The position numbers and the translations under genes were made by a program. From IMG/VR virus record IMGVR_UViG_3300032116_000004, positions 251,779-315,778 of that record: a stretch of 64,000 bases of DNA, one strand, 5' to 3'. Positions 27,901-59,477 of this stretch are shown here, piece by piece. Each line of letters starts with the position of its first letter. Position 1 is the stretch's first letter. The notes below the pieces were generated by a model. That model made no database searches and was not told where the DNA came from. It saw only the letters and a program-made list of their open reading frames with translations.

Positions 27901-30900
27901 GTATCTGCGAGGGCGGAAACCTATCAGGCCAAACGCAAACAGGTCGGCATCACGTTCTAGATTAGCGGAATATTTGTCATAGAAATTGCGGATGTTTTCA
28001 GCCTGGGTGGCAGCATTAGGCAACAGGCCTTTCTGTATCTGATCATAGTCGCTCTTGAGCCACTTAGCAAAGTCAAAAACAGATTCCGGAGGAATGATCT
28101 CTACCGCGGCCCAGTAAGCATCTTTGTATTTGACGATCTGTCCTTTGCTGTAACTGGTGTTGGGAACCCATGGCAAGATGTTGTCTTGATTGAGTATGAA
28201 ACCTTGTGCGTCAAGGCTGCCATCCCAATCGTAGGTGGTGTAGCCCACAAACAACAGGCGACTCTGGCGAGCTCCGGTGGCAGGATCATAGATCAGATCA
28301 GCAAACACAGATTGATTGTCAAGCACGATCATGTGTTCATAGGCACTGAACTTGGCATTGAGGTAACTGAATGTGTTGTTGTTCACTCCACGCAGTGTGA
28401 GATCATTGCCAAAGCGTTCAACCACATAGTCCTGCCCTTGCAGGGCCTGCTTGTTCTGATTGAGCAGGATGTCTTCGGGCGCCGTGACACTGAGTGGTTC
28501 AGCCACTAGATCAGGTTTGAATACATTGAGTTTGTTGGCCACGGGGTTGATATTGATCAACGATCCTGGTGCCCATCCTTGCTGGCTCCAGTAGATGAAC
28601 TCTTGTGCCATCTGTGTCCAATTCAGTATACGGCTGCCGGCTTGATCTTCAAAGGTCATGCCTTGTGCTTCCATGAAACGACCATAACTCAACAAGAAGT
28701 CAACCACAGATGATATACCTGTAAACTCATATCCATAAGGAACTTGCACCACGGTGTTGCTGTAATCCTGTGGTGCGCGAACTACTGTGTCGGCCGCTGT
28801 GATAATACGGAAATTGCCATTGGGGATGGATGCAAATATTTCAAAGTATGGACGTGTGGTCGAATAGCCATACACAGCGTAACCAGTCTGTGTTTTTTGG
28901 ATGATCACAGAACTCCAGGTCAACTGTGCCGATGTAGGATTGCGATACAGCAACAGTTGATAACTTTCATCCGGCAACAAAAGACTGGTATTGAGACTGT
29001 TGGGGCTTGACTTCTCTGTGAATATCTTGATGTATTGTTTGTCACTGAAAGCAGCCATTCTATAACACAATCTCACGTCTAGATTTTCTAGTTTGATTTC
29101 AAGATCTCTAGTAGAATCCAACCCTGTCTGTCGATTGTAGTCAACGATCCAGTTGATGTAACTGTTCTTGATGGTGCCATTGCCGTAGATTTCCAACTGG
29201 CTGGGCTGTATGCGGAATCTATTGTCGTAAAGATACTGTCCAAATTGTTCATTGTAACGATAGAGATCTCTATCGGCAAACAGGGCAAAATATTCTGCCG
29301 GCCTTGTCAACGCCAACAAGCGTTGCACAGCAAAAGGCCATGATGATGACTTGCGCCATGATGCTTCTACCGGTCCATCGTCGCCCACTGTCCAACTCTT
29401 GCGGAAGCTTCCGGTGTCGTATTCGCCAACCATGACATCAAAAGGTGACAGCAACTGACCCTCTGATCCGGCTGGAACCACGCCGGTCAGTCCAGGACGT
29501 TTGTATTTTTCAATCACGTATGGACCCATGGGATCCAGGACTAGACCATTCTCGAGATCTTCCCACAGAACCAAGTTACCAGATGTATATGGTGCAGGAC
29601 CATATTCTAATTCCCACCATGTGGGTTTCTCTGAGAAACCCAACATCTCCCAAGGTCTGGTATTGGGTGCGTCGGTGTCATAGAAATATTCGTAGATACC
29701 GCGCCAATTGCCCAACAGCAATTGACGGTTGAGTTTGTTTTGGCTTGCGCTGTAATTCCAAGTAAATTGGTTGTCAGGAATGTAATCTTGTTCTCTATAG
29801 GCCAACTTATTAGCACCCACCCAGGCCAAAAAGCTCACACCCAGGATCTGATTGACCTCAGCGAGACTGTAATCTGTAGTGCGGAACTGTCCTGGAACCA
29901 CATCCGTATAGGTCAGTGGTATAGGATTATCATTGGGGCCATGAGTAGGGCATTTGAGATTGTTAAAAATGCGTTTTTCAAATTCTAGCAAAACTTGATC
30001 ACGTATGTCTTCATAGGCCACAGTGATAGATCCATCGTGCCCGCGGATGACCAGTGTGGGTTCTACATAAGCATCATCGAGATAAATTTCAGGCATGAAT
30101 GAAGCATATAATCCCAACTTGGTTGGTGTTGACGGAACAAAATTACCATAAGTGGTAGTGTATTCTCGAATGGTGATGGTATCACCAATGGTCAATGGCA
30201 CCAAGATAGTCACACGAGGACCGTCGACGGCCACAGTGTAGTCAATATCGCCGCCCAACAATAATGTATCATTGAGATATATCAAGATAGCACGATAATT
30301 GGCCGAGTCAAAATCATAACTGTAGAGAGTATCAAAGGTATCGTCAGTGATAGGTGTGACCGTATACACTGTTTGTTCGTAGGTCTCACCTGTGGGCAGA
30401 CTGTCAGTCCAGTAAAACGGTGTGAGTTCATTCTTGCCAAGATTGATCAACTCCACGCATTCGTCCAGTATCTGCGCTGTGGTCATGTTTTGCCAGTCGT
30501 AGCGGACCACAGTATCCATCAAGACATTTTTGAATTTTTCATACTGCTGGGCGCTGAATTCCAATGATTTAAAGAAATCAAATCCGGGATCATTGATAAA
30601 CGTCGAAGCCAGAGTCAGCGGAGAACCTTGTTGCAGTATGATCTGGCCGTAAGGGATAAGATTGCCTAGGTCTCTAGTGTTGTTTGGACCGGCTATGTCT
30701 CCGGTAAAAGGAATGAGATTCTGGCAGATGCTACCATAATGATTGCGCACAGTGCCCAGAGTCACTTGAGGAACATCAGCATTGATCGCATTGTTTTCTA
30801 GGTTTACCGGCACGGTGTAAAAGCCCACAGGACTGGCAACCTGGCTGATCACGCTGACTTCCACGATGTCGCCCATGGCCGGAGGAGTGATGAAAGTGAT

Positions 30901-46817: not shown

Positions 46818-47834
46818 ATGACCAATCTATTTAAAAAAGCCATAGTCTTCACTGACATCCATTTTGGACTGAAATCGAATAGCCTGTTGCACAATCAAGA
46901 TTGCGAGCAGTTTGTAGATTGGATCATCGCCCAGGGCAAGGAACACGGTTGCGAAACCGGCATGTTCTTGGGTGACTGGCATCACCATCGTGCGGCTATC
47001 AACTTACAAACACTGAACTTCAGTCTACAAGCATTGGAAAAACTAAGCAAAGCATTCTCTCAGTTCTTTTTTATTCCGGGCAATCACGATCTGTATTATC
47101 GCGACAAACGGGATATCCACGGTGCGGCCTGGGCCCGGCACTTGCCCAACATACATATCTGCAACGATTGGTTCCAAGAAGGTGATGTTGTCATTGCTCC
47201 TTGGTTGGTCGGAGACGAACACCGACGCATCGAAAAATTGAATGCCAAATACATGTTTGGTCATTTTGAACTGCCACACTTCAAAATGAATGCCATGGTA
47301 GAAATGCCCGATCATGGAACCATACAGGTAGATCATTTTGGACATATCGATCAAGTGTTTTCTGGTCACTTTCATCTTCGACAACACAAAAACAACATCA
47401 ACTACATTGGCAATGCGTTTCCGCACAACTTTGCCGATGCTGGTGATGCCAATCGTGGCTGCATGATATTGGAGTGGGGCAAGCAACCCGAATATCATGC
47501 ATGGCCCGAACAGCCCTTATACAATGTCTGGGATCTCAGCCATGTCATTGACAACGCTGAACAAATCTTGAAGCCCAACATGCATGTGCGTGTGCAACTA
47601 GACATCGAAATATCCTATGAAGAAGCCACTTTCATCAAAGACACATTTATCGTCAAGCATGGCCTGCGAGAAATGGCCCTGATACCCAACAAGCGATCTG
47701 CCTTGGAAGAAGACATGGCTCCCGGAGATGTGAAATTTGAATCAGTGGATCAGATCGTCACAGATCAGATCACCAAGATAGAATCAGAGTTCTACGATCC
47801 TAAACTATTACTCCAAATATATCAGGCGCTATGA
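46818..47834 (+). CDS. gp47: recombination endonuclease subunit, gp47/Mre11/SbcD-like
   Basis: DIHFG, GDWHH, GNHD, GHFE, SGHFH metallophosphoesterase motifs. Confidence 0.93.
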   Translation: MTNLFKKAIVFTDIHFGLKSNSLLHNQDCEQFVDWIIAQGKEHGCETGMFLGDWHHHRAAINLQTLNFSLQALEKLSKAFSQFFFIPGNHDLYYRDKRDIHGAAWARHLPNIHICNDWFQEGDVVIAPWLVGDEHRRIEKLNAKYMFGHFELPHFKMNAMVEMPDHGTIQVDHFGHIDQVFSGHFHLRQHKNNINYIGNAFPHNFADAGDANRGCMILEWGKQPEYHAWPEQPLYNVWDLSHVIDNAEQILKPNMHVRVQLDIEISYEEATFIKDTFIVKHGLREMALIPNKRSALEEDMAPGDVKFESVDQIVTDQITKIESEFYDPKLLLQIYQAL

Positions 47835-49321
47835 TTATTTCCACCCTAGAGTTAGAACACCAACTAAAGTCAACCCACAACGTCAAAGTAATTCACGATC
47901 TTGGCAAGCTGTCAACCGGCCCCACGGAGTTGTTTAAGCTACTAGACAGTGTTTACCAAACTAGTTACGAGACAAACGATCGGTTGGTTTTTTACACTTC
48001 ACATTTTATTCCTGAGAGTTTTCTACAGTTCTTTTACGAAACTATCAATTTTATAGATATCAGCAACTGGTTCATAATGATATGTGGGCCAAAAGAAATT
48101 GAGCACGACGTGTTGTCGTGTTGTAAAAAGTTTTCACTTGACTCTGTTCCAATTTGGTTCCACCCAGTTGAGTTAGACAAACAAACACACAAGATTGAAA
48201 ACAACTTTAATTTACCCGATACTATTTGTTCTATACCCTGGCACAACTTACAGATAACACAAAACGGAACTATTACTCCTTGTTGCATGAACAATCTTGA
48301 TCTTGGTAACGTCAACCGTATCAAACTAGATCAAGCGTTCCATGACGAAAAACTACAAAAGTTAAGGGCTAGTTTATTGGCTGGAGAAAAACCAAAAGAG
48401 TGCGACAACTGCTGGAAAGTGGAAGAAAAAAATCTAACTTCTATTAGACTGCACAATGTCAAGCATTTAAAGAGAGAATTTTTAACCAAATATCTTGATC
48501 AACCAAGAGTAGCTACATTAGATTTGAAGTTTAATAACACCTGTAATTTCAAATGCAGGATATGTAACGGTGGAAACAGCTCGTTGTTTGCCCTTGAAGA
48601 TCAAAAGTTCCGCGGATCTAAGTTAGTTGTACAAGATGCTTGGGGGGAGAGTCAAGATTTTATTGATCAAGTTCTAACGTACTTGCCTGACATAAAAAAT
48701 ATTGACATGTTTGGCGGCGAGCCGTTTTTGATTAAACGTTTTAAATCGGTGTTGGAGATGGCAGTTGAAAAAGACTACGCCAAGGACATTAGATTACACT
48801 ACAACAGCAACGGATCCATTTGGCCCAATCATTTGCTACCTGTTTGGCCTAGTTTTAAACTGGTAGACATACATTTTAGTATTGATGCTGTTGGTTCACA
48901 TTTTGAACTACAAAGAGGCGGTCAGTGGTCTGAAGTTGAGGACAACATACTAAGGCTCAAAGATTTACAGTTACCCAACCTGTCTATTAGTATCATGCCC
49001 ACTATCAGTGTCATGAGCGTTTACTACATAGACCAAGTCTACGACTGGGCTTGCAAACATGGTTTTCCTATATTTGTTAACCATGTGCAAGGTGAAGGAA
49101 TGGAGCTACAGGATCTTACAAAAGAAGCCAAAAAAATTATTATTGACAAGTTTCAAGATCACCCCTGGAATGAAATCCAAAATGTTATTAAGATAATACA
49201 AAATTTGCCTGACAGTGATGGCAAGAAGTTTCAATCTAAAATGCAATATTTTGATCAGGTTCGAAGTGAAAGTTTTTCAGCAAGTCACTCTGAGATTGCA
49301 AAAGCCATGAGATATATGTAA
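47831..49321 (+). CDS. twitch-domain radical SAM protein with an extra ~125-aa N-terminal domain
   Basis: ICSIPW..TPCC..CDNCW; CNFKCRIC; FGGEPF; SIDA. Confidence 0.9.
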   Translation: MIISTLELEHQLKSTHNVKVIHDLGKLSTGPTELFKLLDSVYQTSYETNDRLVFYTSHFIPESFLQFFYETINFIDISNWFIMICGPKEIEHDVLSCCKKFSLDSVPIWFHPVELDKQTHKIENNFNLPDTICSIPWHNLQITQNGTITPCCMNNLDLGNVNRIKLDQAFHDEKLQKLRASLLAGEKPKECDNCWKVEEKNLTSIRLHNVKHLKREFLTKYLDQPRVATLDLKFNNTCNFKCRICNGGNSSLFALEDQKFRGSKLVVQDAWGESQDFIDQVLTYLPDIKNIDMFGGEPFLIKRFKSVLEMAVEKDYAKDIRLHYNSNGSIWPNHLLPVWPSFKLVDIHFSIDAVGSHFELQRGGQWSEVEDNILRLKDLQLPNLSISIMPTISVMSVYYIDQVYDWACKHGFPIFVNHVQGEGMELQDLTKEAKKIIIDKFQDHPWNEIQNVIKIIQNLPDSDGKKFQSKMQYFDQVRSESFSASHSEIAKAMRYM

Positions 49322-49330
49322 AATATAAAA

Positions 49331-51094
49331 ATGATACAAATCAAAGACCTAACCGTTAAAAACTTTATGAGTGTGGGCAATGCCACACAAGCCATCAACT
49401 TTGATCGTCAAGACCTTACATTAGTTCTAGGTGAAAACTTAGATTTAGGCGGCGATGGCAGCCGTAACGGCACAGGTAAGACCACTATAATCAATGCACT
49501 GAGTTATGCGCTGTATGGTCAAGCTCTCACCAATATCCGACGCGACAATCTCATCAACAAAGCCAACAGCAAGAACATGTTGGTCAGTTTAGATTTCAAC
49601 ATCAATGGCCGCGACTACCGCATCGAGCGTGGTCGCAAACCCAACATACTGAAATTCTACGTCAACAACGAAGAACAGGCAGCAGATGACAACTCGCAAG
49701 GCGACAGTCGAGAAACACAAGATGCCATAGAGTCTGCCCTGGGCATGACTCACGACATGTTCCGACATGTGCTGGCGCTGAACACATACACAGAACCGTT
49801 TTTGAGCTTGAAGGCCAATGATCAACGTGTGATCATAGAACAACTGTTGGGTATCACCCTTTTGAGTGAGCGTGCTGAGCGCATCAAAGAACTCAATAGA
49901 GAAACCAAAGATGCCATTGCTCAGGAAGAAATGCGTATCCGAGCTGTGCAAGAAGCCAACAAGCGTATAGAAGAACAGATCGAAAATCTGCGGCGTAGGC
50001 AAACAATGTGGAAGACCAAACATGAGGAAGAGACAGATAAAATCCAAAAGGCCTTGGAAGAACTGCGAAAGATCGACATTGACGCAGAGATCCAAGCGCA
50101 CAAGGACTACAAAATTTGGGATCAGAAGCGCAAAGACATCAACGATCTTGCTGGACAAATATCCCGCACGAAACTTGATGTTGATCGCGAGACGAAAAAC
50201 ATTGGCAAACTTAGCAAAGAGATTGCGACTCTTGAACAGCATACCTGTCATACATGCGGTCAAGCCTTCCACGACTCAAAGCACCAACAGGTACTGGCAA
50301 GCAAGCAGGAGGATTTGGCAACAGCAAGAACGTCTTGCCAGGAGCATACACAAACGCTATCAGAAATGGAGGCTGCCCACACCTCCTTGGGCCAGTTAGG
50401 AAAACCTCCCAAGATGTTCTATGATGCGGAAGAAGATGCCATACAACATCGTGCCAACGTAGACAACCTACAACAACAACTGGACATCAAGGCACAAGAA
50501 ACAGATCCCTACGGTGAACAGATCGAAGAGATGACAGGACAGGCCCTGCAAACAGTGACCTATGACACTCTCAACGAACTCACCCGCTTGCAAGAGCATC
50601 AAGACTTCCTGTTAAAACTCTTGACCAACAAAGACTCATTCATCCGCAAAAAGATTATTGAGCAGAATTTGAGTTATTTGAATGCTCGGTTGACATACTA
50701 TCTTGATCGCATCGGCTTGCCACATTCGGTAATATTCCAAAACGATCTCACTGTGGAAATACAAGAATTGGGACGAGATCTAGACTTTGACAATTTAAGT
50801 CGCGGAGAGCGCAATAGACTGATCTTGTCAATGTCATGGGCCTTCCGTGATGTATGGGAATCATTGTATCATCCCATCAACGTGCTGTTCATCGACGAAC
50901 TGGTAGATTCAGGCATGGACACACAGGGTGTGGAAAATTCGTTGGCCTTGCTGAAGAAGATGAGTCGTGAACGGCACAAGTCAATATGGTTAGTATCGCA
51001 CAGAGACGAACTGGCTGGACGTGTTGAAAACATCCTGCGTGTGGTCAAAGAAAACGGCTTTACGTCATACAACACCGACATTGACATAGCATGA
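49331..51094 (+). CDS. gp46: recombination ATPase subunit, gp46/Rad50/SbcC-like
   Basis: KNFMSVGN, NGTGKTT Walker A, CHTCGQ zinc hook, LSRGE signature, FIDE Walker B, VSH. Confidence 0.95.
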   Translation: MIQIKDLTVKNFMSVGNATQAINFDRQDLTLVLGENLDLGGDGSRNGTGKTTIINALSYALYGQALTNIRRDNLINKANSKNMLVSLDFNINGRDYRIERGRKPNILKFYVNNEEQAADDNSQGDSRETQDAIESALGMTHDMFRHVLALNTYTEPFLSLKANDQRVIIEQLLGITLLSERAERIKELNRETKDAIAQEEMRIRAVQEANKRIEEQIENLRRRQTMWKTKHEEETDKIQKALEELRKIDIDAEIQAHKDYKIWDQKRKDINDLAGQISRTKLDVDRETKNIGKLSKEIATLEQHTCHTCGQAFHDSKHQQVLASKQEDLATARTSCQEHTQTLSEMEAAHTSLGQLGKPPKMFYDAEEDAIQHRANVDNLQQQLDIKAQETDPYGEQIEEMTGQALQTVTYDTLNELTRLQEHQDFLLKLLTNKDSFIRKKIIEQNLSYLNARLTYYLDRIGLPHSVIFQNDLTVEIQELGRDLDFDNLSRGERNRLILSMSWAFRDVWESLYHPINVLFIDELVDSGMDTQGVENSLALLKKMSRERHKSIWLVSHRDELAGRVENILRVVKENGFTSYNTDIDIA

Positions 51095-51714
51095 CATCCC
51101 GGATCATACGAGTCACACCTACCGAACAATACTTCAGCATCAATTGGCAATTGGCTGTGCGTTGCAACTATGATTGCATGTATTGTTCTCCCATGTGGCA
51201 TGATGATCATAGCCAGCATCATGATCTTGACACTATGAAACAGGCTTGGTTAAACATATTTGAAAAGACCAGCAAACAAAATCTACCCTATAAGATCGCA
51301 TTTACCGGTGGAGAACTCACTTCAAACAAACACTTTCTACCGTTTGTCACTTGGTTGCGGAAGGAATATGATCAGCACATATTCAAATTGCTGGCTACCA
51401 CCAATGGCAGCGCCAATCTCAAGTATTATCAGAAAATGTTCCAAGCGTTAGACAACATCGCATTCAGTGTGCATTCGGAACACATCAATGAAGAGAAATT
51501 TTTTGACATGATCATACAACTTAAGAAAAGTATCTCACCTGATAAATTCTTGCAGGTCGCTATCATGGATGAATACTGGAATCAAGATCGTATTCCGTTG
51601 TATATCAATCTGCTAGAACATCACGACATCAGCTACACTGTGAACAAGATAGATTATTCCTATCAGACTCGCACCGTGCCCATATTCAAAGGAAAATTGA
51701 ATCTTGGAATTTGA
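51091..51714 (+). CDS. radical SAM protein, core domain only
   Basis: WQLAVRCNYDCMYC; FTGGE; TTNG; SVHSE. Confidence 0.88.
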   Translation: MTSRIIRVTPTEQYFSINWQLAVRCNYDCMYCSPMWHDDHSQHHDLDTMKQAWLNIFEKTSKQNLPYKIAFTGGELTSNKHFLPFVTWLRKEYDQHIFKLLATTNGSANLKYYQKMFQALDNIAFSVHSEHINEEKFFDMIIQLKKSISPDKFLQVAIMDEYWNQDRIPLYINLLEHHDISYTVNKIDYSYQTRTVPIFKGKLNLGI

Positions 51715-52024
51715 AAATCATCAATACTATAACTGTGAAATAGAACTGTCAGATGGGAGATCGTTCAAGGTCAGTGCCAACTGGATGCACAATAACGATT
51801 TAGATCATTGGTCAGGATGGAGTTGCGATGCAGGTTATCGTCGATTGGATATAGACAAGGATTTCAACGTCTACAGCGCAGTTTGTCAAAACGATCGCTT
51901 GGGCAATCTTTTCAAAGAATGGAGCCCGTTTGATGCTCCCGGAATCTGTCGACGGAATCGATGCACAGGTTGTACCGACGATCTTTTGATTGGAAAACGT
52001 GATATTTCTATATCTGAGAAATAA
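51704..52024 (+). CDS. stand-alone SPASM/twitch-like Cys-rich domain
   Basis: GWSCDAG..VC..LGN..ICRRNRCTGCTDD; TTG start. Confidence 0.7.
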   Translation: MEFENHQYYNCEIELSDGRSFKVSANWMHNNDLDHWSGWSCDAGYRRLDIDKDFNVYSAVCQNDRLGNLFKEWSPFDAPGICRRNRCTGCTDDLLIGKRDISISEK

Positions 52025-52041
52025 TTGATAATTATGTGCTC

Positions 52042-52482
52042 ATGTCATGGCTTTTCGAATCCCGAGAAATCACAGAGTTACCCGAAACGTGTGTCGGGTT
52101 TGTTTATTTGATCACCAATAAACTTACCGGCCGGCAGTATATTGGCAAAAAATTAGCAAAGTTCAAGAAAACAACATATCGAGTAGTCAAACTCAAAAAT
52201 GGCAAAAAGAAACGCAAAAAAATCAGAGGCGCGATAGATTCAGATTGGCAGACATATTATGGCAGTTCTCCGGAGTTATCTCGAGATGTTGAACTGCTAG
52301 GCACCGAAAACTTCTCACGTGAAATACTGTATTACTGCCAATCCAAATCGGAATGCAGTTACATAGAGGCTCGCGAACAATTCTCCCGACGTGTATTAGA
52401 AAGTGATGACTATTACAACGGACACATACAGGTCCGTGTGCATGGCAGTCACATCAAAGGCAAACTAAGCAGTCAAGGCTAG
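52042..52482 (+). CDS. minimal GIY-YIG nuclease (Seg-like catalytic domain) with a basic insert
   Basis: GFVYLITN..QYIGKK..YYGSS..FSREIL..E..YYN; ATG 52042 follows TAATTA-N7. Confidence 0.85.
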   Translation: MSWLFESREITELPETCVGFVYLITNKLTGRQYIGKKLAKFKKTTYRVVKLKNGKKKRKKIRGAIDSDWQTYYGSSPELSRDVELLGTENFSREILYYCQSKSECSYIEAREQFSRRVLESDDYYNGHIQVRVHGSHIKGKLSSQG

Positions 52483-52910
52483 CACAGGCCAATGTCGTGT
52501 GCCCTAGACCTGGATCCAGGATCACAGGGATGGAAGACTCACCGCGCTAGTGAGCACTCAATCAGTATCCTTGACAGGACCACGATCGCAAACACCTGCG
52601 GTTTGATTGTTTGAATAGAATATAAAGGGAAAAAGACGTGCTAGTGATAGCACACGTCAGCATGATATGATAGCGTATGTCGTGTTGGCCGCCGTTGTAA
52701 TAAAGACGGAGCTCGAGGTATCGGACAACCGCCTCTGTAATGCTCTAACGCTGTGTGACTGAGTCGACTCGGATGATGACACCTCTTTGCCCTGGGCGGG
52801 CAAAGTGTGACCAAACAATCTGGATGATAACTGTTATCTCGCTTCGCTCGATTATGTAATCAATTCATGAGCGACAGCGAATGAATAGACTTGCGTAGCA
52901 AGTCTCAATT
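52482..52910 (+). ncRNA. putative large structured non-coding RNA or origin element, family unknown
   Basis: No ORF of 60 aa or more; more than 10 hairpins, a G-U-rich 14-bp stem, a GUGA tetraloop and a 9-bp long-range helix (52605-52613 with 52812-52820). Confidence 0.6.
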
Positions 52911-52915
52911 GGATG

Positions 52916-53251
52916 TTAGAACTGATCAGGCCAATCACGGAACAGTGCGTGCTGGATGTTGCCCGAAACAAACTGATTGAAACTTTTGTGTTTTTCTTCG
53001 AGTTCGCCTTCCAATGGCGCCACACGACGAAATGCTGAGTCCATCTGTGCCATGTCTTTAAACTCCATGATGATCATCCATTCGGGCATGTCTGCGATTG
53101 AACGGAATCCCATCTTGCAACGGGTTATCCTATAACTCATCATCTTGCCCTCAGACATCAGGTGCTCAAAAAAACTTCGCATTCCTGTGACCCAATCAAG
53201 GTCTGAGATATCACCTTCTTTGTCTGCCCATATCGTGTATAAGTCGCTCAT
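52916..53251 (-). CDS. DUF6614-like small alpha/beta protein
   Basis: Recalled pattern Y.IW..HL..G....RITR.KMGF..EW.I.MEF..MAQMD.AF..ALFRDWPD. Confidence 0.5.
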   Translation of the reverse strand: MSDLYTIWADKEGDISDLDWVTGMRSFFEHLMSEGKMMSYRITRCKMGFRSIADMPEWMIIMEFKDMAQMDSAFRRVAPLEGELEEKHKSFNQFVSGNIQHALFRDWPDQF

Positions 53252-53688
53252 GTCATTGGTCCTAGTATTTCAAATCCTTCTATCTCTTTTTTGTAAAGAT
53301 GTGCCTGCTCGAGATAGAGATAATCAAAGCCCCTTGCTTTGTATATGGCACATTCTGTTTTCATGGTTTCAATGCCCAATCTTGATTGCGGATCATGATA
53401 TGTCCATGCAAATTGATCACAGAGAGCATTTTTGTCGTCATACCTTCGTATGAGACTGAATGCTACCATGCGTTCTTGATCAAAATATCCAATGACGTCA
53501 GTCATTGGATCGGTATATCGGCTTCGAAACATGGGTATCACACTACTGAAATGCTTATAGATACAGTAAGTTCTATAGATATTGTCAAGTTCCACCATTT
53601 GCTGTTCGGTAGGTATGAGATATCCCCACTGGGCTGATGCTTGATAATTGGTTTTTGCTAGATTGATACGGGCAAATTGATAGGTCAT
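53248..53688 (-). CDS. GNAT-fold protein resembling the C-terminal domain of aminoacyl-tRNA--protein transferases (ATE1/Bpt)
   Basis: Y..ERMVAFS..YHDPQSRLG..E....KARGFDYLYL..YKKEIEGFEIL. Confidence 0.6.
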   Translation of the reverse strand: MTYQFARINLAKTNYQASAQWGYLIPTEQQMVELDNIYRTYCIYKHFSSVIPMFRSRYTDPMTDVIGYFDQERMVAFSLIRRYDDKNALCDQFAWTYHDPQSRLGIETMKTECAIYKARGFDYLYLEQAHLYKKEIEGFEILGPMT

Positions 53689-54188
53689 TGTCTTGGGTCC
53701 TTTCTATGTTGGAACAGATCTTTTAGGTATTCTTCTGGCCAAGTGTGGTAGAAGCCTTTCGTGGCCATGGACCGGGCCTTGCTGTCAAGATCACTCACAC
53801 TCTGGCACAGTGCCAGGGCATAGGTTCCTTGGTTCATGCACACACCATTTACCCATTCAAGATCTGCAGGATGATCTTCTAGCGCAATGATATCTTGAGG
53901 CAAGAGAAATCCAACATTCACAGAATGAAGATCGCGGGCAAATTGTTCTCTGGGCCATTGCGCGGGATCATATGCATAGATGATGACTTCTTTGTTGCCC
54001 AATCCTGTGGTTGCTAGATCCATGAGATCGGTGTAAACATCAACACCTATGCGTATTTCGTAACTGCGATCCAAGCGTGCTCGGCGTGCATAAGGGCAAG
54101 GTGGCCATCCGCCCAGCGCAGGATTAGGGACTTCAACAAAGGTTTCTATCCATCGTTCGATATCTTGTTTTACTTGCTCTAGTTGCAT
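53685..54188 (-). CDS. DUF1415-like protein
   Basis: WIETFVE..PCPYAR..DHP..Q..L. Confidence 0.45.
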   Translation of the reverse strand: MQLEQVKQDIERWIETFVEVPNPALGGWPPCPYARRARLDRSYEIRIGVDVYTDLMDLATTGLGNKEVIIYAYDPAQWPREQFARDLHSVNVGFLLPQDIIALEDHPADLEWVNGVCMNQGTYALALCQSVSDLDSKARSMATKGFYHTWPEEYLKDLFQHRKDPRQ

Positions 54189-54421
54189 TAGAAGAATGCC
54201 ATTCCGGTTTTTTTAGTGGTCTCGAGATTTTCTTTGATCAATGCACCCACAGATTCTCGCTCACCAAAACTGAGATTGAGTGCTTCTTCATAGGTCAGGC
54301 CTCCTCGCATATACCAACACATCTTGAATATGTCGTCTTTGATTGCTTTGACTTCACGATCATATCCTTCTACTATTTTGGTGATGCGCTCAGGACTCGA
54401 GGTCAGGAGGCGGATACGAAA
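54188..54421 (-). CDS. gp51-like tail/hub assembly chaperone segment, probably expressed by -1 frameshift from the gp26-like gene
   Basis: WYMRGGLTYEEALNLSFGER..IKEN; no convincing start of its own; slippery AAATTTTTTC at the overlap. Confidence 0.7.
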   Translation of the reverse strand, partial: FRIRLLTSSPERITKIVEGYDREVKAIKDDIFKMCWYMRGGLTYEEALNLSFGERESVGALIKENLETTKKTGMAFF

Positions 54422-55251
54422 AAATTTGAGACATCCAGGGTGAATGGTGTTTCGTATTCTTTCTGGCATTCTGGCCCGTTGCATTTGAGTCTCAAGGGTT
54501 TGAGTTCGCTGTGCTCACGCAGTTGTGTGGCATGATCACGTATGGAGTTGAAGATCTCTCTGTCGCAGTTTTGAACAAACTCTTCTATGTGTTCGGGTTC
54601 CACCACTATTTCACCATCGGCACGGATCATGGAGATCACACCGCTCAGGGCAGACATAGTCATGACCGTGAGTTTCTGGAAGGCCTGTGTGAGCAAGCGT
54701 ATCTTTTCTTCTTCGGGCAGATCGGAATTTGGTAGGCTGTCCAGGATTTTCTGATCCTGGAACTGCTTCATGGAATTGGCGTTGGCCTGTTCATAACTCA
54801 GCGGCCGGAAAAATATCTCTACGTCGCCGTGTTTGATAGATTCGCTGTAGTCACCGGCTTTGATGTTGTCCAAGACTTGTCGGAGATCTAGGCCAAATGA
54901 GTTCTCGTTGTTGCAGTGCGGGCAGTTGCTTTCAAAATCCATTTCGTGTCCATAACTGGCGATACGGATAGCGATCAACAGTGTGTCAAGATCCATCTGC
55001 GGAACATGCCATGCGTTCTTGATGGCAGGAATGCAACTCTGGATCACATTGACCAATGCTGATCCATTGAACAATGCATCTGCTGTGCGATAAGTTATTT
55101 CATCGATGGCAGTCATGGGATACACTGGCAGCTCTCGATTTGGGGGCAGTTCGAGCGAACCTTGAGGGTAGTAGTTTCCATCCGACGGCAGGCGGATGTA
55201 AATGGCCGGCTGACGGAAAAATTTGCGTAACGGATTAGAGGTTTCTGGCAT
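54403..55251 (-). CDS. baseplate hub assembly protein, T4 gp26-like
   Basis: Start revised to ATG 55251; NPLRKFFRQP..LPSDG..PMTAIDE..D.LLIAIRIASYG..CPHC..C..C..F..D.SNFF. Confidence 0.85.
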   Translation of the reverse strand: MPETSNPLRKFFRQPAIYIRLPSDGNYYPQGSLELPPNRELPVYPMTAIDEITYRTADALFNGSALVNVIQSCIPAIKNAWHVPQMDLDTLLIAIRIASYGHEMDFESNCPHCNNENSFGLDLRQVLDNIKAGDYSESIKHGDVEIFFRPLSYEQANANSMKQFQDQKILDSLPNSDLPEEEKIRLLTQAFQKLTVMTMSALSGVISMIRADGEIVVEPEHIEEFVQNCDREIFNSIRDHATQLREHSELKPLRLKCNGPECQKEYETPFTLDVSNFFVSAS

Positions 55252-55262
55252 ATTTGGGCACC

Positions 55263-55286
55263 ATAAATAATTGATACAATACTTAT
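55263..55286. promoter_or_regulatory. overlapping bidirectional late promoter pair
   Basis: TAAATA (+, 55264-55269) and TAAGTA (-, 55285-55280), 10 nt apart, between divergent genes. Confidence 0.6.
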
Positions 55287-55297
55287 CGGCGTAGATA

Positions 55298-57676
55298 ATG
55301 GACGAATCAGAAAAACTAATCAAGATGATGCAAGAGGCCATGGCGGAATTCCGCAAAAGCGGCAGCAACAGCGCCGAAACCATGGCCAAACTCAACAAGG
55401 CCATCAATACCAATACCAAAGCACAAGACGAGAATACCAAAGCACAAGACGAGCATACCCAGCAGACCATGAAAGCTGCCGAGGCCATGGAAAAGTTCAA
55501 AGACACCACTCGAGCAGTGTTGTCTGGGTTGGGATCAGCTGCGCAAGGTGCTAGAGACAATCGCGAAGATTTCCGTTCATTAAAACCAGCAGTGGGTGCC
55601 GCAGGCACTGCGCTCAAAAACATGACCGGTGGACTGGGCACTGCCATAGATGCCCTGGGCCAGGCCGTTTCGGGCATATCGTCATTTGGAATAATGCTGG
55701 GTCCCAAGGGTGCGATTGCCAGCATGATAGGCATGGGCCTTGGTTCAGTGACGTCAGTGATTGGCAAGGCTATCAAGGCACACGGTAAAGATGTAGTAGA
55801 CGCAGGCACTGCTTTCATGAACTTCTCGTTGGACGAAACCCAACGTGTGGTCGGAGCCTTCCAAGAACTCAGCAAGATTGGTGGTGTCACTGGCAACAGT
55901 TTCCAAGGACTGCAACAGGCTGCTCTGGAAACTGGGCTCAGCATGGATTCCTTTGCCCGCGTCATTGCCAAGAACAGCCGAGGTCTGGCCCTTGCAGGTG
56001 GATCGGTCACACAGGGCATGCGAGCAGTGGTGGACATCACCAAGGCCAGCAAAGGATTTGAAGACCAGTTTCTTAAGTTGGGAATTGGCTTTGAAGAACA
56101 GCGAGATCTCACAGCACAGTTCCTGAGTTATCAGCGCACCCAGACAGGAGTCAATCTCCGCGACACTCGCTCACTGGCTGATGCGTCTAAAGAATACATC
56201 TTGCAATTGGATCAACTGGCCAGACTCACAGGCATGAGCCGACAAGAAGTTGCGTCTCGGTTGGAACAACAAAATCGAGAGTTGAAATTTGGCGCTGTGT
56301 TGGCTGATGCTGGTAAACGTGGTAAATCATTTGCAGATGCGATCAGTGGTGCCGCAACAATGTTGGAAGCTAAAGGGTTGAAAACTATGGCCCAAGGTTT
56401 CAAAGACAGCTTTGACAATCTAGGCACTAAAGAAGCACAGTTGTTCTTCCAGGCCACTGGTGGTGCTGGACCAGAACTGGTCAATTTCTTGGAACGCACC
56501 GGCGATCTAGCCACGTTCATGGAACGACTAGGGCAAGCCACAGCCGCAACGTATGAAACCATGGGCGGTACCAAGCAGGAACGCATGGTGGGAGGCCTGG
56601 GCACATACTTTGATCCTGTATACGCCGAAATGCGCCTTGTGACCAATGGCATCCTTGGAACGGCAGAAGCTATAAATGCCGTGGGTAAAGAGCAAAAAGA
56701 TGCCAAGAACAATCAAAGTGACCTCACAAACACAGTGGTTGGCGCACAAAAATCGCTGAGAAATTTTGCAGTGGGCATAGACAGCGTGGTAGTGCAACAG
56801 TTTCCCAAGATGGCAGGTGCTGTGGGAATGTTTACCGATTCACTGGCCTCTGGTGCCAGCGCACTGGACAAAATATTAGGCACAGGTATCACCAGAGGTG
56901 CACCTCCCGGCTCCTACAGTCGCACCCAGGGAGCGGGGCCGCCTGGAACAGCAGGTGGTCCTCCTGGTAAACCACCCATGACAGGATCAGCTGGACTCAT
57001 GGGTGCTGCCGCAAAGAATCTCAATCCTGGCAATCTACGTTTTGCAGGCCAGGACAAAGCCACAGTGGGCACCGGCGGATTTGCCAAATTTGAAACTGTG
57101 GACGATGGTCTGGTAGCATTGGCCCGTCAGTTAGATCTTTACCTGACAGGTAAAAGCCGTAGTGGCAAAAGAGATACCATCTCCAGCATCATTTCGGCTT
57201 ACGCACCGCCCAATGAAAACGACACCAGATTGTATATCGAGCAAATGGCCCGCTTCATGGGCAAAGGTGCTGATGAAGTCCTGCCCAGAGATCCAGCCAC
57301 CATGGCCAAACTCATGGTAGGTATCATTGGCAAGGAAAGCATGGGCGGTCTGGAAAAAGGTTACAACATGCGCGGGGGCATACAGTTTGCTGTGGCCCAG
57401 GCGCTGGGCATAGAACCCAGCAAGGTAGGGAATTTCCAATATGGTGGCATAGCATCTGGTCCAAAGTCGGGATATGCGGCCATGCTACACGGCACAGAAG
57501 CAGTGGTTCCCCTGGCTGGCGGCAGATCCATACCGGTAGAGATGACTGGCATGACTGACACCATGGGCCAACAAGTGACCATGATGGGCGAGCAGTTGAG
57601 CCGATTTGATACCATGATTGGTCTGCTACAGAACAACGTGGACATATCTCGCAAGTTACTGTCAGCAACCCGCTGA
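55298..57676 (+). CDS. tape measure-like protein with a C-terminal lysozyme-like domain
   Basis: Ala/Gly-rich helical body; LARLTGMSR; NLNPGNLRF..GFAKFET..G..AL..YAPPNENDT; C-terminal GGIASGP.SGY.A.LHGTEAVVPL. Confidence 0.75.
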   Translation: MDESEKLIKMMQEAMAEFRKSGSNSAETMAKLNKAINTNTKAQDENTKAQDEHTQQTMKAAEAMEKFKDTTRAVLSGLGSAAQGARDNREDFRSLKPAVGAAGTALKNMTGGLGTAIDALGQAVSGISSFGIMLGPKGAIASMIGMGLGSVTSVIGKAIKAHGKDVVDAGTAFMNFSLDETQRVVGAFQELSKIGGVTGNSFQGLQQAALETGLSMDSFARVIAKNSRGLALAGGSVTQGMRAVVDITKASKGFEDQFLKLGIGFEEQRDLTAQFLSYQRTQTGVNLRDTRSLADASKEYILQLDQLARLTGMSRQEVASRLEQQNRELKFGAVLADAGKRGKSFADAISGAATMLEAKGLKTMAQGFKDSFDNLGTKEAQLFFQATGGAGPELVNFLERTGDLATFMERLGQATAATYETMGGTKQERMVGGLGTYFDPVYAEMRLVTNGILGTAEAINAVGKEQKDAKNNQSDLTNTVVGAQKSLRNFAVGIDSVVVQQFPKMAGAVGMFTDSLASGASALDKILGTGITRGAPPGSYSRTQGAGPPGTAGGPPGKPPMTGSAGLMGAAAKNLNPGNLRFAGQDKATVGTGGFAKFETVDDGLVALARQLDLYLTGKSRSGKRDTISSIISAYAPPNENDTRLYIEQMARFMGKGADEVLPRDPATMAKLMVGIIGKESMGGLEKGYNMRGGIQFAVAQALGIEPSKVGNFQYGGIASGPKSGYAAMLHGTEAVVPLAGGRSIPVEMTGMTDTMGQQVTMMGEQLSRFDTMIGLLQNNVDISRKLLSATR

Positions 57677-57682
57677 TAGCGG

Positions 57683-57688
57683 TAAATA
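57683..57688 (+). promoter_or_regulatory. late promoter (TAAATA-N7-ATG) for portal
   Basis: gtaaata-taacact-ATG. Confidence 0.6.
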
Positions 57689-57695
57689 TAACACT

Positions 57696-59477
57696 ATGTC
57701 ATGGAAAAAATATTTTAAAGTCGCTGATGTTTCAGGACAGTTCAGCCCAATTTCGGGGCAGGTTCCACGCGGTCCCAGTTATGGCACAGGCTACGGTGTA
57801 GACGACAAAGCCCATGCGGAATTTGCCTTCCGCAACTATGCCAGCAGACTGCCAGAGGTCTACACTGGCCATCCCAACAGGATGGAACGCTACAATCAAT
57901 ACGAGAACATGGATGGCGATTCGGAAATCAATGCCTGCCTTGACATCCTAGCCGAATTTTCCACACAGACCTGTGAGGCCAACGACACACCTTTTGAAAT
58001 AGGTTTCACAGAAACACCCACTGAGCACGAAGTAGACATCATCAAGAAACAGCTCCAGCAATGGACCAAACTCAACAAGTTTGACAATCGCATGTTCAAG
58101 ATGTTCCGCAATACTCTGAAGTATGGCGATCAAGTGTTTGTGCGTGATCCTGAAACCTTTGAACTCTACTGGGTGGATATGACCAAAGTGGCCCGTGTGA
58201 TCGTGAACGAAAGCGAAGGCAAGCGTCCTGAACAGTATGTGATCCGAGACATCAATCCCAATTTCCAATCCATGTCAGTGGCGGCCAAGACCACCAATGA
58301 CTACAACACACAGCCACCATCGGGTGGGTATTCAGCACCCTACAACTACACAGCACCCAATGCTCCTAACTCGTCAGGACAGAGTCGATTCCAGCGTTCT
58401 GTGAACGAAACCTGCATCGATGCCAAGCACGTGGTGCATCTCAGCCTGAGCGAAGGTTTGGACTACTATTGGCCATTTGGACAGTCAGTGCTGGAGATGA
58501 TATTCAAGGTATTCAAGCAAAAAGAATTGCTGGAAGATGCTATCCTGATCTATCGCATATCTCGTGCGCCAGAACGCAGGATATTCAAAATTGATGTGGG
58601 CAACATGCCCAGCCATTTGGCCATGCAGTTCGTGGAACGTGTGAAAAATGAAATCCATCAGCGACGTATTCCGTCTAATACAGGTGGTCGTGAAAATATC
58701 ATGGATACCACATACAATCCGCTGTCAATCAACGAAGACTACTTCTTTCCGGTCACAGCCGAAGGTCGTGGCTCGGATGTTACTACCCTGCAAGGCGGAC
58801 AGAATCTAGGCGAGATCGACGACTTAAAATATTTCAACAACAAGATGTGCCGCGGTCTGCGTGTGCCGTCATCATATCTACCCACTGGGCCAGATGATTC
58901 TGATCGCCCTATGAATGACGGGCGTGTGGGCACTGCGCTGATACAGGAATATCGTTTCAATCAATACTGCGAGCGTATGCAACGTCAGATCGTGCAGAAA
59001 CTGGATGACGAGTTCAAGATGTTCCTGCGCTGGAGAGGTTTCAACATTGACTCTGGCCTGTTCAATATCAAGTTTGCACCGCCACAGAATTTTGCCAGTT
59101 ATCGCCAGGCTGAACTGGACACCACACGGATGACAGCGTTCAGCGGGCTAGAACAGTTGCCCTATTTGAGCAAGAGATTCCTGATGAAACGCTATCTTGG
59201 ACTGTCTGAAGAAGAGATTGCAGACAACGAAAAACTATGGAAAGAAGAGCGAGATCAACCCGAACTGAGCACGCAAGGTGGTCAAGATCTGCGTTCAGTA
59301 GGCATCAGCCCTGCTGATATCGAAGCAGACATCACAGCTGGTGAAGAGATCGCAGGTGCCGCAGGTGCACCCGAAGGTGCTGTGGCACCCATGGCTCCAG
59401 GCATGGCCGGTGCTCCTGGCGCTGCCGCAGCTGGCGCAGGACCTGCCGGTGGTGCCGCTCCTGTGCCCACTATCTAA
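57696..59477 (+). CDS. gp20: portal vertex protein, T4 gp20-like
   Basis: LEDAILIYRISRAPERRIFKIDVGNMP; EDYFFP; LGEIDDLKYF..GLRVPSS; start revised to MSWKKYF. Confidence 0.95.
   Translation: MSWKKYFKVADVSGQFSPISGQVPRGPSYGTGYGVDDKAHAEFAFRNYASRLPEVYTGHPNRMERYNQYENMDGDSEINACLDILAEFSTQTCEANDTPFEIGFTETPTEHEVDIIKKQLQQWTKLNKFDNRMFKMFRNTLKYGDQVFVRDPETFELYWVDMTKVARVIVNESEGKRPEQYVIRDINPNFQSMSVAAKTTNDYNTQPPSGGYSAPYNYTAPNAPNSSGQSRFQRSVNETCIDAKHVVHLSLSEGLDYYWPFGQSVLEMIFKVFKQKELLEDAILIYRISRAPERRIFKIDVGNMPSHLAMQFVERVKNEIHQRRIPSNTGGRENIMDTTYNPLSINEDYFFPVTAEGRGSDVTTLQGGQNLGEIDDLKYFNNKMCRGLRVPSSYLPTGPDDSDRPMNDGRVGTALIQEYRFNQYCERMQRQIVQKLDDEFKMFLRWRGFNIDSGLFNIKFAPPQNFASYRQAELDTTRMTAFSGLEQLPYLSKRFLMKRYLGLSEEEIADNEKLWKEERDQPELSTQGGQDLRSVGISPADIEADITAGEEIAGAAGAPEGAVAPMAPGMAGAPGAAAAGAGPAGGAAPVPTI

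Follow-up and report, generated by a model that had tools for sequence, protein, structure and literature searches.

Why would a bacteriophage carry, in one tightly packed set, a miniature relative of the arginyl-tRNA transferase ATE1, a putative heme-oxygenase relative and a small protein of the DUF6614 family? This question is raised by a locus in a 316-kb uncultured T4-like freshwater phage, of which a window of 64,000 nucleotides was analysed (IMG/VR record IMGVR_UViG_3300032116_000004, positions 251,779 to 315,778). According to the original prediction, the three genes form a phage module for tRNA-dependent tagging, perhaps a split enzyme, that acts on host proteins, on new N-termini produced by the prohead protease, or on glycans. 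Nothing like this gene set has been studied in a virus. We first asked whether the genes are real and then what each of them may do.

The predicted gene set was confirmed. Three minus-strand ORFs are located at 53685–54188 (167 aa, further referred to as g167), 53248–53688 (146 aa, g146) and 52916–53251 (111 aa, g111), and both junctions are 4-bp ATGA overlaps. No alternative genetic code was used. All three genes have thousands of homologues and conserved synteny, and hence are not chance ORFs. The first gene shares one base (54188) with an upstream minus-strand ORF of 98 aa (54188–54484), which in turn overlaps by 82 bp the minus-strand gene at 54403–55251. The 98-aa ORF is conserved at 37–100% identity in related loci and belongs to no Pfam, PHROG or NCBIfam family. 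The gene at 54403–55251, which starts at 55251 and heads the same-strand gene string, had been called a tail chaperone gene. It encodes a T4 gp26-type baseplate hub protein (Pfam T4_baseplate, E 5.2e-15; phrog_150 "baseplate hub", E 3e-17) and is not a demonstrated tail chaperone. The structured element on which the cassette was said to end head-on is the Rfam Polynucleobacter-1 RNA motif (RF01718) at 52477–52612 on the plus strand, found at full length with 113.1 bits (gathering score 37, E 1.2e-25) and convergent with the 3'-end of the cassette. Late expression, which had also been suggested, is inferred from position only. The T4 late-promoter motif TATAAATA occurs once in the window, far from the cassette and at chance level, and scans for sigma-70 promoters and terminators were at background.

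The family assignments made in the original prediction hold up, although with different directness. The assignment of g111 to DUF6614 (PF20319) is direct and covers the full length (E 1.3e-21, 77.2 bits against a cut-off of 25). The closest bacterial DUF6614 proteins are 38–42% identical to g111. The sequence of this protein is unusually conserved: it is 77–100% identical across a phage clade (84–94% in most loci) in which g146 is about 70%, g167 45–68%, the baseplate hub about 50% and the tape-measure-like gene about 27% identical. Hits to g111 that appeared bacterial turned out to be phage contigs binned into MAGs. Bacterial DUF6614 genes, found in 7 of 401 Pseudomonadota genomes, are surrounded by gyrA, an M32 carboxypeptidase or a GT2 glycosyltransferase, and no g146- or g167-like genes were observed in these neighbourhoods, so that they give no functional lead. 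The one paper mentioning DUF6614 describes the anti-Druantia protein Druad1. Given that Druad1 is 44 aa long and the resemblance is only predicted, we do not treat it as a relative.

The protein g146 itself had no Pfam hit at E≤1, and PHROGs and NCBIfam scans gave nothing. Its assignment to the ATE_C type (PF04377) therefore rests on profile and fold evidence. A profile of short phage members alone has ATE1 as its top five PDB hits (E 0.01–0.03), and addition of long relatives gives E 3.6e-6; ATE1 is the only family with solved structures reached by sequence. Relatives of 225–268 aa pass the ATE_C gathering score (25.5–33.8 bits against a cut-off of 25). The AlphaFold2 model (pLDDT 95) comprises one complete GNAT domain, and g146 begins at its first strand. 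The core carries the ATE_C signature, namely the QFAW-Y-P-LG block and the YLG...YK...F-E block. The residues W95, E112, Y132 and K133 align with Trp260, Glu277, Tyr303 and Lys304 of klAte1 (PMC9351520), which hold the tRNA 3'-end and the arginyl moiety, and are conserved in 23, 20, 23 and 21 of 23 family sequences, respectively. In contrast, the ATE_N domain is entirely absent: no ATE_N hit was found, there is no Zn/Fe-S Cys cluster, and there is no counterpart of the acceptor pocket (Arg80, Tyr25, Tyr87 and the Zn finger) by which ATE1 recognises acidic protein N-termini (PMC9351520). Even the long relatives carry an N-terminal extension without the Cys motif. With 146 aa, the protein is shorter than Bpt (about 240 aa) and ATE1 (about 500 aa).

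Could g146 be an ordinary acyl-CoA-dependent acetyltransferase, the ATE-like residues reflecting fold conservation only and the neighbours being unrelated small genes packed together? The fold search cannot separate aminoacyl-tRNA-dependent from acyl-CoA-dependent tandem GNATs. The best Foldseek E-values (2.6e-6 to 3e-5) belong to the aminoacyl-phosphatidylglycerol synthases (MprF, L-PGS) and to the aminoacyl-tRNA-dependent peptide synthases FemX and Sbb17/Sba18, with ATE1 at E 7e-5. The former enzymes match the whole g146 model with VIA Z-scores of 13–15 and use aminoacyl-tRNA donors, but they are tandem-GNAT enzymes of which g146 matches only the C-terminal GNAT, at 6–16% sequence identity. 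At the same time, the top VIA hit is VipF with acetyl-CoA (Z 15.0 against 14.8 for MprF), and N-myristoyltransferases score Z 13–14. Moreover, phage genomes are compact and overlapping starts are common, and g146-like and g167-like genes each occur alone in some phages. On the other hand, the sequence profile leads only to ATE1, the ATE1 W/E/YK positions are 87–100% conserved, and the pyrophosphate-binding motif Q/R-x-x-G-x-G/A is absent from the β4–α3 loop, which reads H-D-P-Q-S-R-L-G-I-E (residues 98–107) and fits the motif in no register; the family consensus here is P-x-L-R-L-G-I. The g167–g146 pair is also kept with overlapping genes across lineages where g146 identity falls to about 35% and the flanking genes differ. 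We consider the acetyltransferase reading very unlikely, and the use of aminoacyl-tRNA, inferred from sequence, the most economical reading of the conserved residues.

The protein g167 is a remote relative of the DUF1415 / DUF6875 group, a placement for which the support is indirect. DUF6875 was recently shown to be cytochrome P422, a thiolate-heme oxygenase with a catalytic Cys in the motif RxGxVCP. The match of g167 to DUF6875 (PF21780) is below the gathering score (13.6 bits against 24.5) and covers residues 8–46 only. However, profile–profile comparison with bacterial DUF6875 gives a probability of 88.9% and E 2.4e-6 over 103 columns, with Cys31–Pro32 of g167 placed on the Cys–Pro of the P422 motif, so that Cys31 aligns with the heme-ligating Cys. 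Cys31 lies in GGWPPCPYA and is invariant in 34 sequences; D105, H106 and P107 are invariant as well, in agreement with the PPCPYA and DHP motifs of the original prediction. The two proteins are of the same size (about 170–180 aa) and share the layout of four strands plus helices, the AlphaFold2 model of g167 (pLDDT 95) having four strands and six helices. This model matches an ESM Atlas cluster that mixes DUF1415 and DUF6875 with TM 0.82/0.74 over 162 aa. Still, heme binding is not assured: the propionate-binding Arg of RxGxVCP is replaced by Gly with a one-residue shift, and the Trp-binding motifs of P422 (SBR1–3), including MxGxF and Dx2(Q/H)x3K, are not conserved, MxGxF being aligned to A-L-E-D-H.

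In motif spacing (G-x3-C-P; HP motif) g167 is closer to DUF1415 (PF07209), a family with no known function. The protein misses the Pfam threshold of this family as well, a search of the phage genome with the DUF1415 HMM gave no hit, and direct profile–profile comparison yielded only a weak match (probability 24%, E 8e-4). Homologues of g167 in phages HMO-2011 (gp66) and CRP-345 (gp78), with probability 99% to g167, reach DUF1415 with probabilities of 87–95%, and CRP-345 gp78 scores 20.1 bits against the cut-off of 26. Foldseek of g167 against the PDB returned no hit at E≤0.001. An exhaustive VIA search of the PDB gave a single fold match, AglA (Z 7.4, rmsd 3.8 Å over 148 of 167 residues; the next hit has Z 4.3), without any Pfam hit to the corresponding sequence family YqcI/YcgG (PF08892), which includes the heme N-hydroxylases AglA, DcsA and GntA. 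AglA is a thiolate-heme arginine N-hydroxylase with a four-strand sandwich fold.

We then considered how stably the genes stay together. The trio is conserved in about 80 related phage loci. Among 107 locus records carrying a g146-like gene (a few are duplicates of one contig), 64 have the heme-like gene, the transferase and DUF6614 in that order, five have the heme-like gene and the transferase alone, and 16 also carry a gene of the amidinotransferase family in or beside the cassette, at four different positions. In those of the five loci whose flanks were examined, the pair lies beside the family-B DNA polymerase gene, whereas a distant pair flanked by RNR and MazG is among the amidinotransferase loci. 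In addition, 15 loci have the g146-like gene alone, and HMO-2011 and CRP-345 have the g167-like gene alone. Genes upstream of the long ATE_C forms and of HMO-2011 gp66 and CRP-345 gp78 show no relation to g167, g146 or g111. In two loci (L135 and L136) the pair lies next to phrog_3704, labelled "ferredoxin"; given the absence of an Fe-S Cys pattern and of a Pfam hit, this label was rejected. In blastn and tblastn searches of cultured phages no homologue of g146 or g111 was found, and for g167 only those in HMO-2011, CRP-345 and CRP-810.

The additional gene is AGAT-like (E 1e-18 to L-arginine:glycine amidinotransferase; HsvA, SxtG and StrB1 are also matched), has the catalytic His/Asp of this family and the C-terminal GG-H-C motif, and all its copies belong to one family. 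It is not part of the cassette in this window. Its three to four paralogues are scattered in the genome, one of them with Ser in place of the motif His, and thus its recurrent adjacency in relatives might reflect a mobile, expanding gene family.

The interpretation given in the original prediction is therefore only partly supported. A single-domain ATE/Bpt-type GNAT and the co-occurrence of the genes elsewhere, which had been named beforehand as a test, are supported. N-degron tagging of proteins, in which the added amino acid would create or mask N-degrons, is not supported, though not excluded. In its favor, ATE1 is the only solved family reached by sequence, the donor-site residues are conserved, the genes of this phage follow a baseplate hub gene and lie near the portal gene, a plausibly late position, and in the eukaryotic Cys/Arg N-degron branch oxidation precedes arginylation, so that the pairing of an oxygenase with an ATE has a conceptual parallel. 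Against it, ATE_N is missing, and g167 is not related to ATE_N but apparently to a heme-oxygenase superfamily that acts on free amino acids and guanidines. Further, in other phages the pair lies among replication and nucleotide-metabolism genes rather than structural genes, and the association with an amidinotransferase is hard to explain by N-degron tagging. As for a split enzyme with g167 and g111 as subunits for acceptor recognition, a complex prediction for g167 and g146 scored 0.01 and 0.08 against a mark of 0.32, which is evidence neither for nor against binding. We regard the tagging reading as unlikely.

The location of the pair near replication genes in distant phages suggests another possibility, modification of nucleic acids. 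Phage Mu Mom is a GNAT proposed or shown to transfer glycine from Gly-tRNA to adenine in DNA, and it is made late (PMC13219725). T4-like phages commonly hypermodify DNA. By analogy, g146 would aminoacylate a base in phage DNA or RNA, and g167 and the amidinotransferase would tailor the adduct, protecting the genome from host nucleases. However, Mom has 231 aa with an essential HTH-like insertion and a basic DNA cleft, whereas g146 has neither, nor any extra DNA-binding element in its 146 residues. Its net charge is about −2 (pI 5.9), no Mom or DNA-modification family was hit in Pfam, PHROGs or NCBIfam, and its sequence affinity is to ATE1, no relationship to Mom being detected. This reading is likewise improbable.

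The explanation we favor, with about even confidence, is that the cassette is a compact, translationally coupled enzyme module of a T4-like jumbo phage that probably builds or tailors an arginine- or guanidine-containing product, with charged tRNA as the activated amino-acid donor. The analysis itself establishes the homology, the predicted folds, the conserved residues of g146 and the invariant Cys of g167 at the heme-ligand position; the transferase activity, tRNA use, heme binding, oxygenase activity and the nature of the acceptor are inferred, and no biochemical data exist for any of the three families in phages. In this view, g146 would transfer an aminoacyl group, most likely arginyl, to an amine acceptor, which, ATE_N being missing, is not an acidic protein N-terminus recognised in the ATE1 manner. 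The putative thiolate-heme oxygenase g167 would oxidise or N-hydroxylate the substrate or product with electrons from host redox partners, and g111 would be an accessory protein under very strong constraint. In relatives, the amidinotransferase homologue would be a fourth member. The slightly acidic character of g146 counts against this view, as do the occurrence of the g146-like or the g167-like gene alone in some phages and the absence of such neighbours from bacterial DUF6614 genes. In its favor, the phage encodes 26 tRNAs, including two tRNA-Arg, and a tmRNA.

The closest working model, by analogy, is argolaphos biosynthesis. There AglC, an Arg-tRNA-dependent ligase, joins Arg to an amine, and AglA then N-hydroxylates the guanidine; AMPn-Arg is made enzymatically with ArgRS, tRNA and AglC and hydroxylated by AglA, and the aminoacyl-tRNA ligases of the cluster are GNATs. 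That pathway belongs to a Streptomyces gene cluster making a phosphonopeptide; no phosphonate genes are present here, and g167 is about 75 aa shorter than AglA. The product in the phage might serve as an antimetabolite, in host manipulation or as a modification of a macromolecule.

Aminoacyl-tRNA-dependent transferases outside translation are few: ATE1/Bpt/Aat, Fem, MprF, some natural-product ligases and, since 2026, phage Mu Mom. The non-canonical thiolate-heme oxygenases (P422, YqcI/YcgG) were structurally defined only in 2025. Here putative members of both types sit side by side, with overlapping genes, in a phage lineage abundant in lakes. About 2,400 protein clusters at 90% identity exist for each gene, and no cultured representative is in INPHARED. 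A bolder possibility, which we consider doubtful although the data do not rule it out, is that a large group of uncultured aquatic T4-like and jumbo phages encodes its own arginyl-tRNA-dependent pathway, in which the stripped-down transferase, a P450-like thiolate-heme enzyme of the P422/YqcI fold, an amidinotransferase and DUF6614 together make an N-oxygenated arginine/guanidine compound, or install such a group on a macromolecule, during infection. This would be the first virus-encoded ATE-family enzyme, the first viral member of the non-canonical thiolate-heme oxygenases, and a phage-borne natural-product-like pathway drawing on the translation machinery. If the favored model holds, the cassette would give the smallest known ATE-type catalytic unit, useful for dissecting donor against acceptor recognition, and a first functional handle on DUF1415 and DUF6614, and it would show that phages divert charged tRNA into guanidine/arginine chemistry, with consequences for host takeover, chemical warfare or genome protection.

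The window corresponds to bases 251779–315778 of the 315,778-bp IMG/VR virus record, which is 91% complete according to CheckV. The record is a T4-like jumbo phage, as the T4 portal gene gp20 is located at 57618–59477 and a T4 gp26-type baseplate hub gene at 54403–55251. The genome (contig G000:C1 in our numbering) encodes 26 tRNAs, with the bank of tRNA genes at 213596–230485, outside the window, covering nearly all amino acids (two tRNA-Arg and three tRNA-Met/Ile-CAU), and a tmRNA with the tag ANDELYALAA. Related contigs come from lake and other aquatic metagenomes.

Three minus-strand ORFs, g167 (53685–54188), g146 (53248–53688) and g111 (52916–53251), occupy exactly the positions assigned to the cassette in the original prediction, and that observation is confirmed. 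Both junctions are ATGA overlaps. The g167 ORF shares one base with an upstream 98-aa ORF, which in turn overlaps the baseplate hub gene by 82 bp, and hence five genes form one tight same-strand string. Each of g146 and g167 has about 2,300–2,400 homologous protein clusters in metagenomes, and these are real genes. Only 46 bp (55251–55298) separate the divergent start codons of the gp26-like gene on the minus strand and of a 792-aa tape-measure-like ORF on the plus strand, so that the promoters for both must overlap coding sequence or each other.

At its other end the string is convergent with a full-length Polynucleobacter-1 RNA motif (Rfam RF01718, 113 bits, E = 1e-25) located at 52477–52612 on the plus strand and followed by about 300 nt of further non-coding sequence (52613–52915). 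This orphan sRNA motif, here in a jumbo phage, may be phage-borne. It lies directly after a gene for a SegE-type GIY-YIG homing endonuclease (52036–52482, plus strand; Pfam E = 1e-32), a family labeled ‘NAD synthetase’ by the best PHROG match (phrog_447), which is probably a mislabel. Two radical-SAM genes, at 47831–49321 and 51091–52024 on the plus strand, encode a 496-aa protein with a SPASM domain and a 207-aa protein, respectively, the second being followed by a 106-aa Cys-rich ORF. They flank a 587-aa gene just upstream of the segE-like gene and may form a separate peptide- or cofactor-maturation module. Elsewhere in the window, a single 4,835-aa ORF at 18979–33486 on the minus strand is followed by ORFs of 1,135, 780 and 987 aa on the same strand, and this looks like a giant virion or fibre-type protein region.

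Direct family scans of g146 against Pfam, PHROGs and NCBIfam yielded no matches. An exhaustive phmmer search of 1.8 billion representative sequences identified 107 relatives, including proteins of 225–268 aa in which the matching region is a C-terminal domain that passes the Pfam ATE_C gathering score. These long viral relatives (proteins P0318–P0345; loci L083–L085) carry an N-terminal extension resembling ATE_N but lacking its cysteines and look like intermediates between Bpt and the 146-aa form; one of them lies near a 2OG-Fe(II) oxygenase gene. A profile built only from the short (about 145 aa) phage proteins has ATE1 as its top five PDB hits with E = 0.01–0.03, and addition of the long relatives improves this to E = 3.6e-6. 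The ESM Atlas neighbors of g146 are viral clusters in which 10–21% of members carry ATE_C.

The AlphaFold model of g146 (pLDDT 95) is one complete GNAT domain. Foldseek ranks MprF aminoacyl-PG synthase domains, the aminoacyl-tRNA-dependent peptide synthases Sbb17/Sba18, VipF and ATE1 highest. In the VIA re-alignment, aminoacyl-tRNA-dependent enzymes (MprF, Z = 14.8; L-PGS, 14.7; FemX, 14.3) tie with acyl-CoA-dependent ones (VipF, 15.0; NMT, 14.4), always on the C-terminal GNAT domain of a tandem pair. Hence, the fold alone does not decide the donor, and an ordinary acyl-CoA-dependent GNAT among unrelated neighbors remains possible, although we consider it unlikely. The sequence does lean one way. 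The HMM alignment to Kluyveromyces lactis Ate1 places W95, E112, Y132 and K133 of g146 on Trp260, Glu277, Tyr303 and Lys304, residues assigned by mutagenesis to binding of the tRNA 3’-end, recognition of the arginyl moiety and catalysis (PMC9351520). These positions are 87–100% conserved in the phage family, whereas the CoA pyrophosphate motif is absent.

The whole ATE_N domain is missing from g146, including the Zn finger, Arg80, Tyr25 and Tyr87, which together recognize acidic N-termini. We infer from the sequence that g146 works like the donor half of an ATE-type transferase, with an as yet unidentified acceptor, but is not a canonical family member. The conserved Glu, which according to PMC9351520 is lacking in the leucyl transferase Bpt, hints at a basic aminoacyl group such as Arg, although this is an inference. 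The interpretation given in the original prediction, a tRNA-dependent tagging module acting on host proteins, on neo-N-termini or on glycans, is only partly supported: the ATE-type donor site is retained, but N-terminal tagging of proteins seems to us unlikely.

For g167, the original assignment to a DUF1415-like family has no direct HMM support, but the indirect support is consistent. A weak DUF6875 hit covers residues 8–46. Distant homologs in phages HMO-2011 and CRP-345 (hhalign probability 99%) reach DUF1415 with probabilities of 87–95%. Bona fide bacterial DUF1415 genes cross-hit the DUF6875 model, and the two families align with a probability of 91.6%. The g167 family profile aligns to bacterial DUF6875 with a probability of 88.9% and E = 2.4e-6. 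Finally, the predicted structure (pLDDT 95; four strands and six helices) superposes on an ESM Atlas cluster annotated as DUF1415/DUF6875 with TM = 0.82 over 162 residues.

In December 2025 DUF6875 was shown to be ‘cytochrome P422’, that is, thiolate-ligated b-heme enzymes with a four-strand sandwich fold and an essential Cys in the RxGxVCP motif, which hydroxylate tryptophan. The invariant Cys31-Pro32 of g167 aligns with that Cys-Pro, whereas the Arg of the motif and the Trp-binding motifs are not retained. A Foldseek search of the PDB with the g167 model returned no hits at E ≤ 0.001. The exhaustive VIA search found a single outlier, AglA, with Z = 7.4 over 148 of 167 residues, the next hit having Z = 4.3. 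AglA is the prototype YqcI/YcgG enzyme; it has a thiolate heme (Cys44) on a four-strand sandwich and N-hydroxylates the guanidine of an arginine conjugate. Thus g167 is best described as a remote member of an emerging superfamily of non-canonical thiolate-heme oxygenases, with heme binding itself being inferred.

The g111 protein is a clear DUF6614 member (E = 1.3e-21), 38–42% identical to the closest bacterial members, and no solved relative of it was found. It is under exceptional constraint and far more conserved than any neighboring gene, including the structural genes: across the phage clade (loci L002–L081) the identity of g111 is 77–100% (84–94% in most loci), compared to about 70% for g146, 45–68% for g167, about 50% for the baseplate hub and about 27% for the tape-measure-like gene. 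Bacterial DUF6614 genes are solitary and located among housekeeping genes. Contigs carrying g111 at 71–94% identity were also found in bacterial MAGs from lakes (L088, L089 (Haliscomenobacter MAG), L090 (Legionella MAG) and L091 (Bacteroidales MAG)), but these are most likely phage contigs mis-binned into the MAGs and hence not reliable host evidence.

We tallied 107 locus records carrying a g146-like gene, a few of them being duplicates of one contig. Of these, 64 show the order g167-like, g146-like, g111-like. In five, the g167–g146 pair occurs alone, and in those with examined flanks the neighbors include a family-B DNA polymerase. The most distant pair, with g146 identity of about 35%, is located between RNR and MazG genes and carries an amidinotransferase gene (see below) just downstream of g146. 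In 20 records g146 occurs alone; 15 of these represent one lineage in which it lies next to a phrog_3577 protein and DNA polymerase, and the rest are mostly truncated contigs. The phrog_3577 protein is encoded next to g146-like genes in two phage lineages other than the one studied here (L123, 4322–5011; L136, 6032–6712) and once in the genome studied here, far from the cassette (G000:C1, 92717–93280), and may be a further module member. Genes similar to g167 also occur alone. The pair is therefore a recurrent but not obligate module, and its late-gene position in this phage, inferred from gene order, is not a family trait.

An unexpected fourth member is seen in 16 loci, where a gene encoding 284–410 aa lies on the same strand in or next to the cassette. 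It occupies four different positions: between g167 and g146, between g146 and g111, after g111, or after g146. All copies but one, a 284-aa insert in locus L064 unrelated to the others, belong to one family (loci L015, L021, L025, L028, L035, L036, L038, L046, L053, L061, L068, L070, L080, L082 and L131). The family profile hits L-arginine:glycine amidinotransferase with E = 1e-18, as well as HsvA, SxtG and StrB1, and the catalytic His/Asp and the GG-H-C motif are invariant. The genome studied here retains three to four paralogs outside the cassette (among them G000:C1, 247746–248801, 49507–50583 and 85198–86148), one of which has Ser in place of the motif His. Repeated juxtaposition in different orders argues for functional linkage to arginine/guanidine chemistry, the alternative being a mobile, expanding gene family.

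The module thus combines a putative Arg-type aminoacyl-tRNA transferase core, a putative thiolate-heme oxygenase whose nearest solved relative hydroxylates arginine guanidines and, in relatives, an arginine amidinotransferase homolog. All functional statements, including aminoacyl transfer from tRNA, heme binding and oxygenation, are inferred from homology, conserved residues and gene neighborhood. Mom-like modification of nucleic acids is another possibility, which we consider as doubtful as protein tagging. The closest known logic is that of argolaphos biosynthesis, where AglC uses Arg-tRNA to make AMPn-Arg (the substrate was prepared with ArgRS, tRNA and AglC), which is then N-hydroxylated by AglA; the aminoacyl-tRNA ligases of that cluster are GNATs.

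The component superfamilies are known, but we found no paper describing this combination, and no member occurs among 50,697 deposited phage genomes. What is new is a virus-encoded, single-domain putative ATE-type transferase coupled to a P422/YqcI-like heme protein (heme binding being inferred) and DUF6614, and its wide distribution in uncultured phages. By analogy with argolaphos biosynthesis we favor, with moderate confidence, a small tailoring pathway for an arginine/guanidine-containing product.
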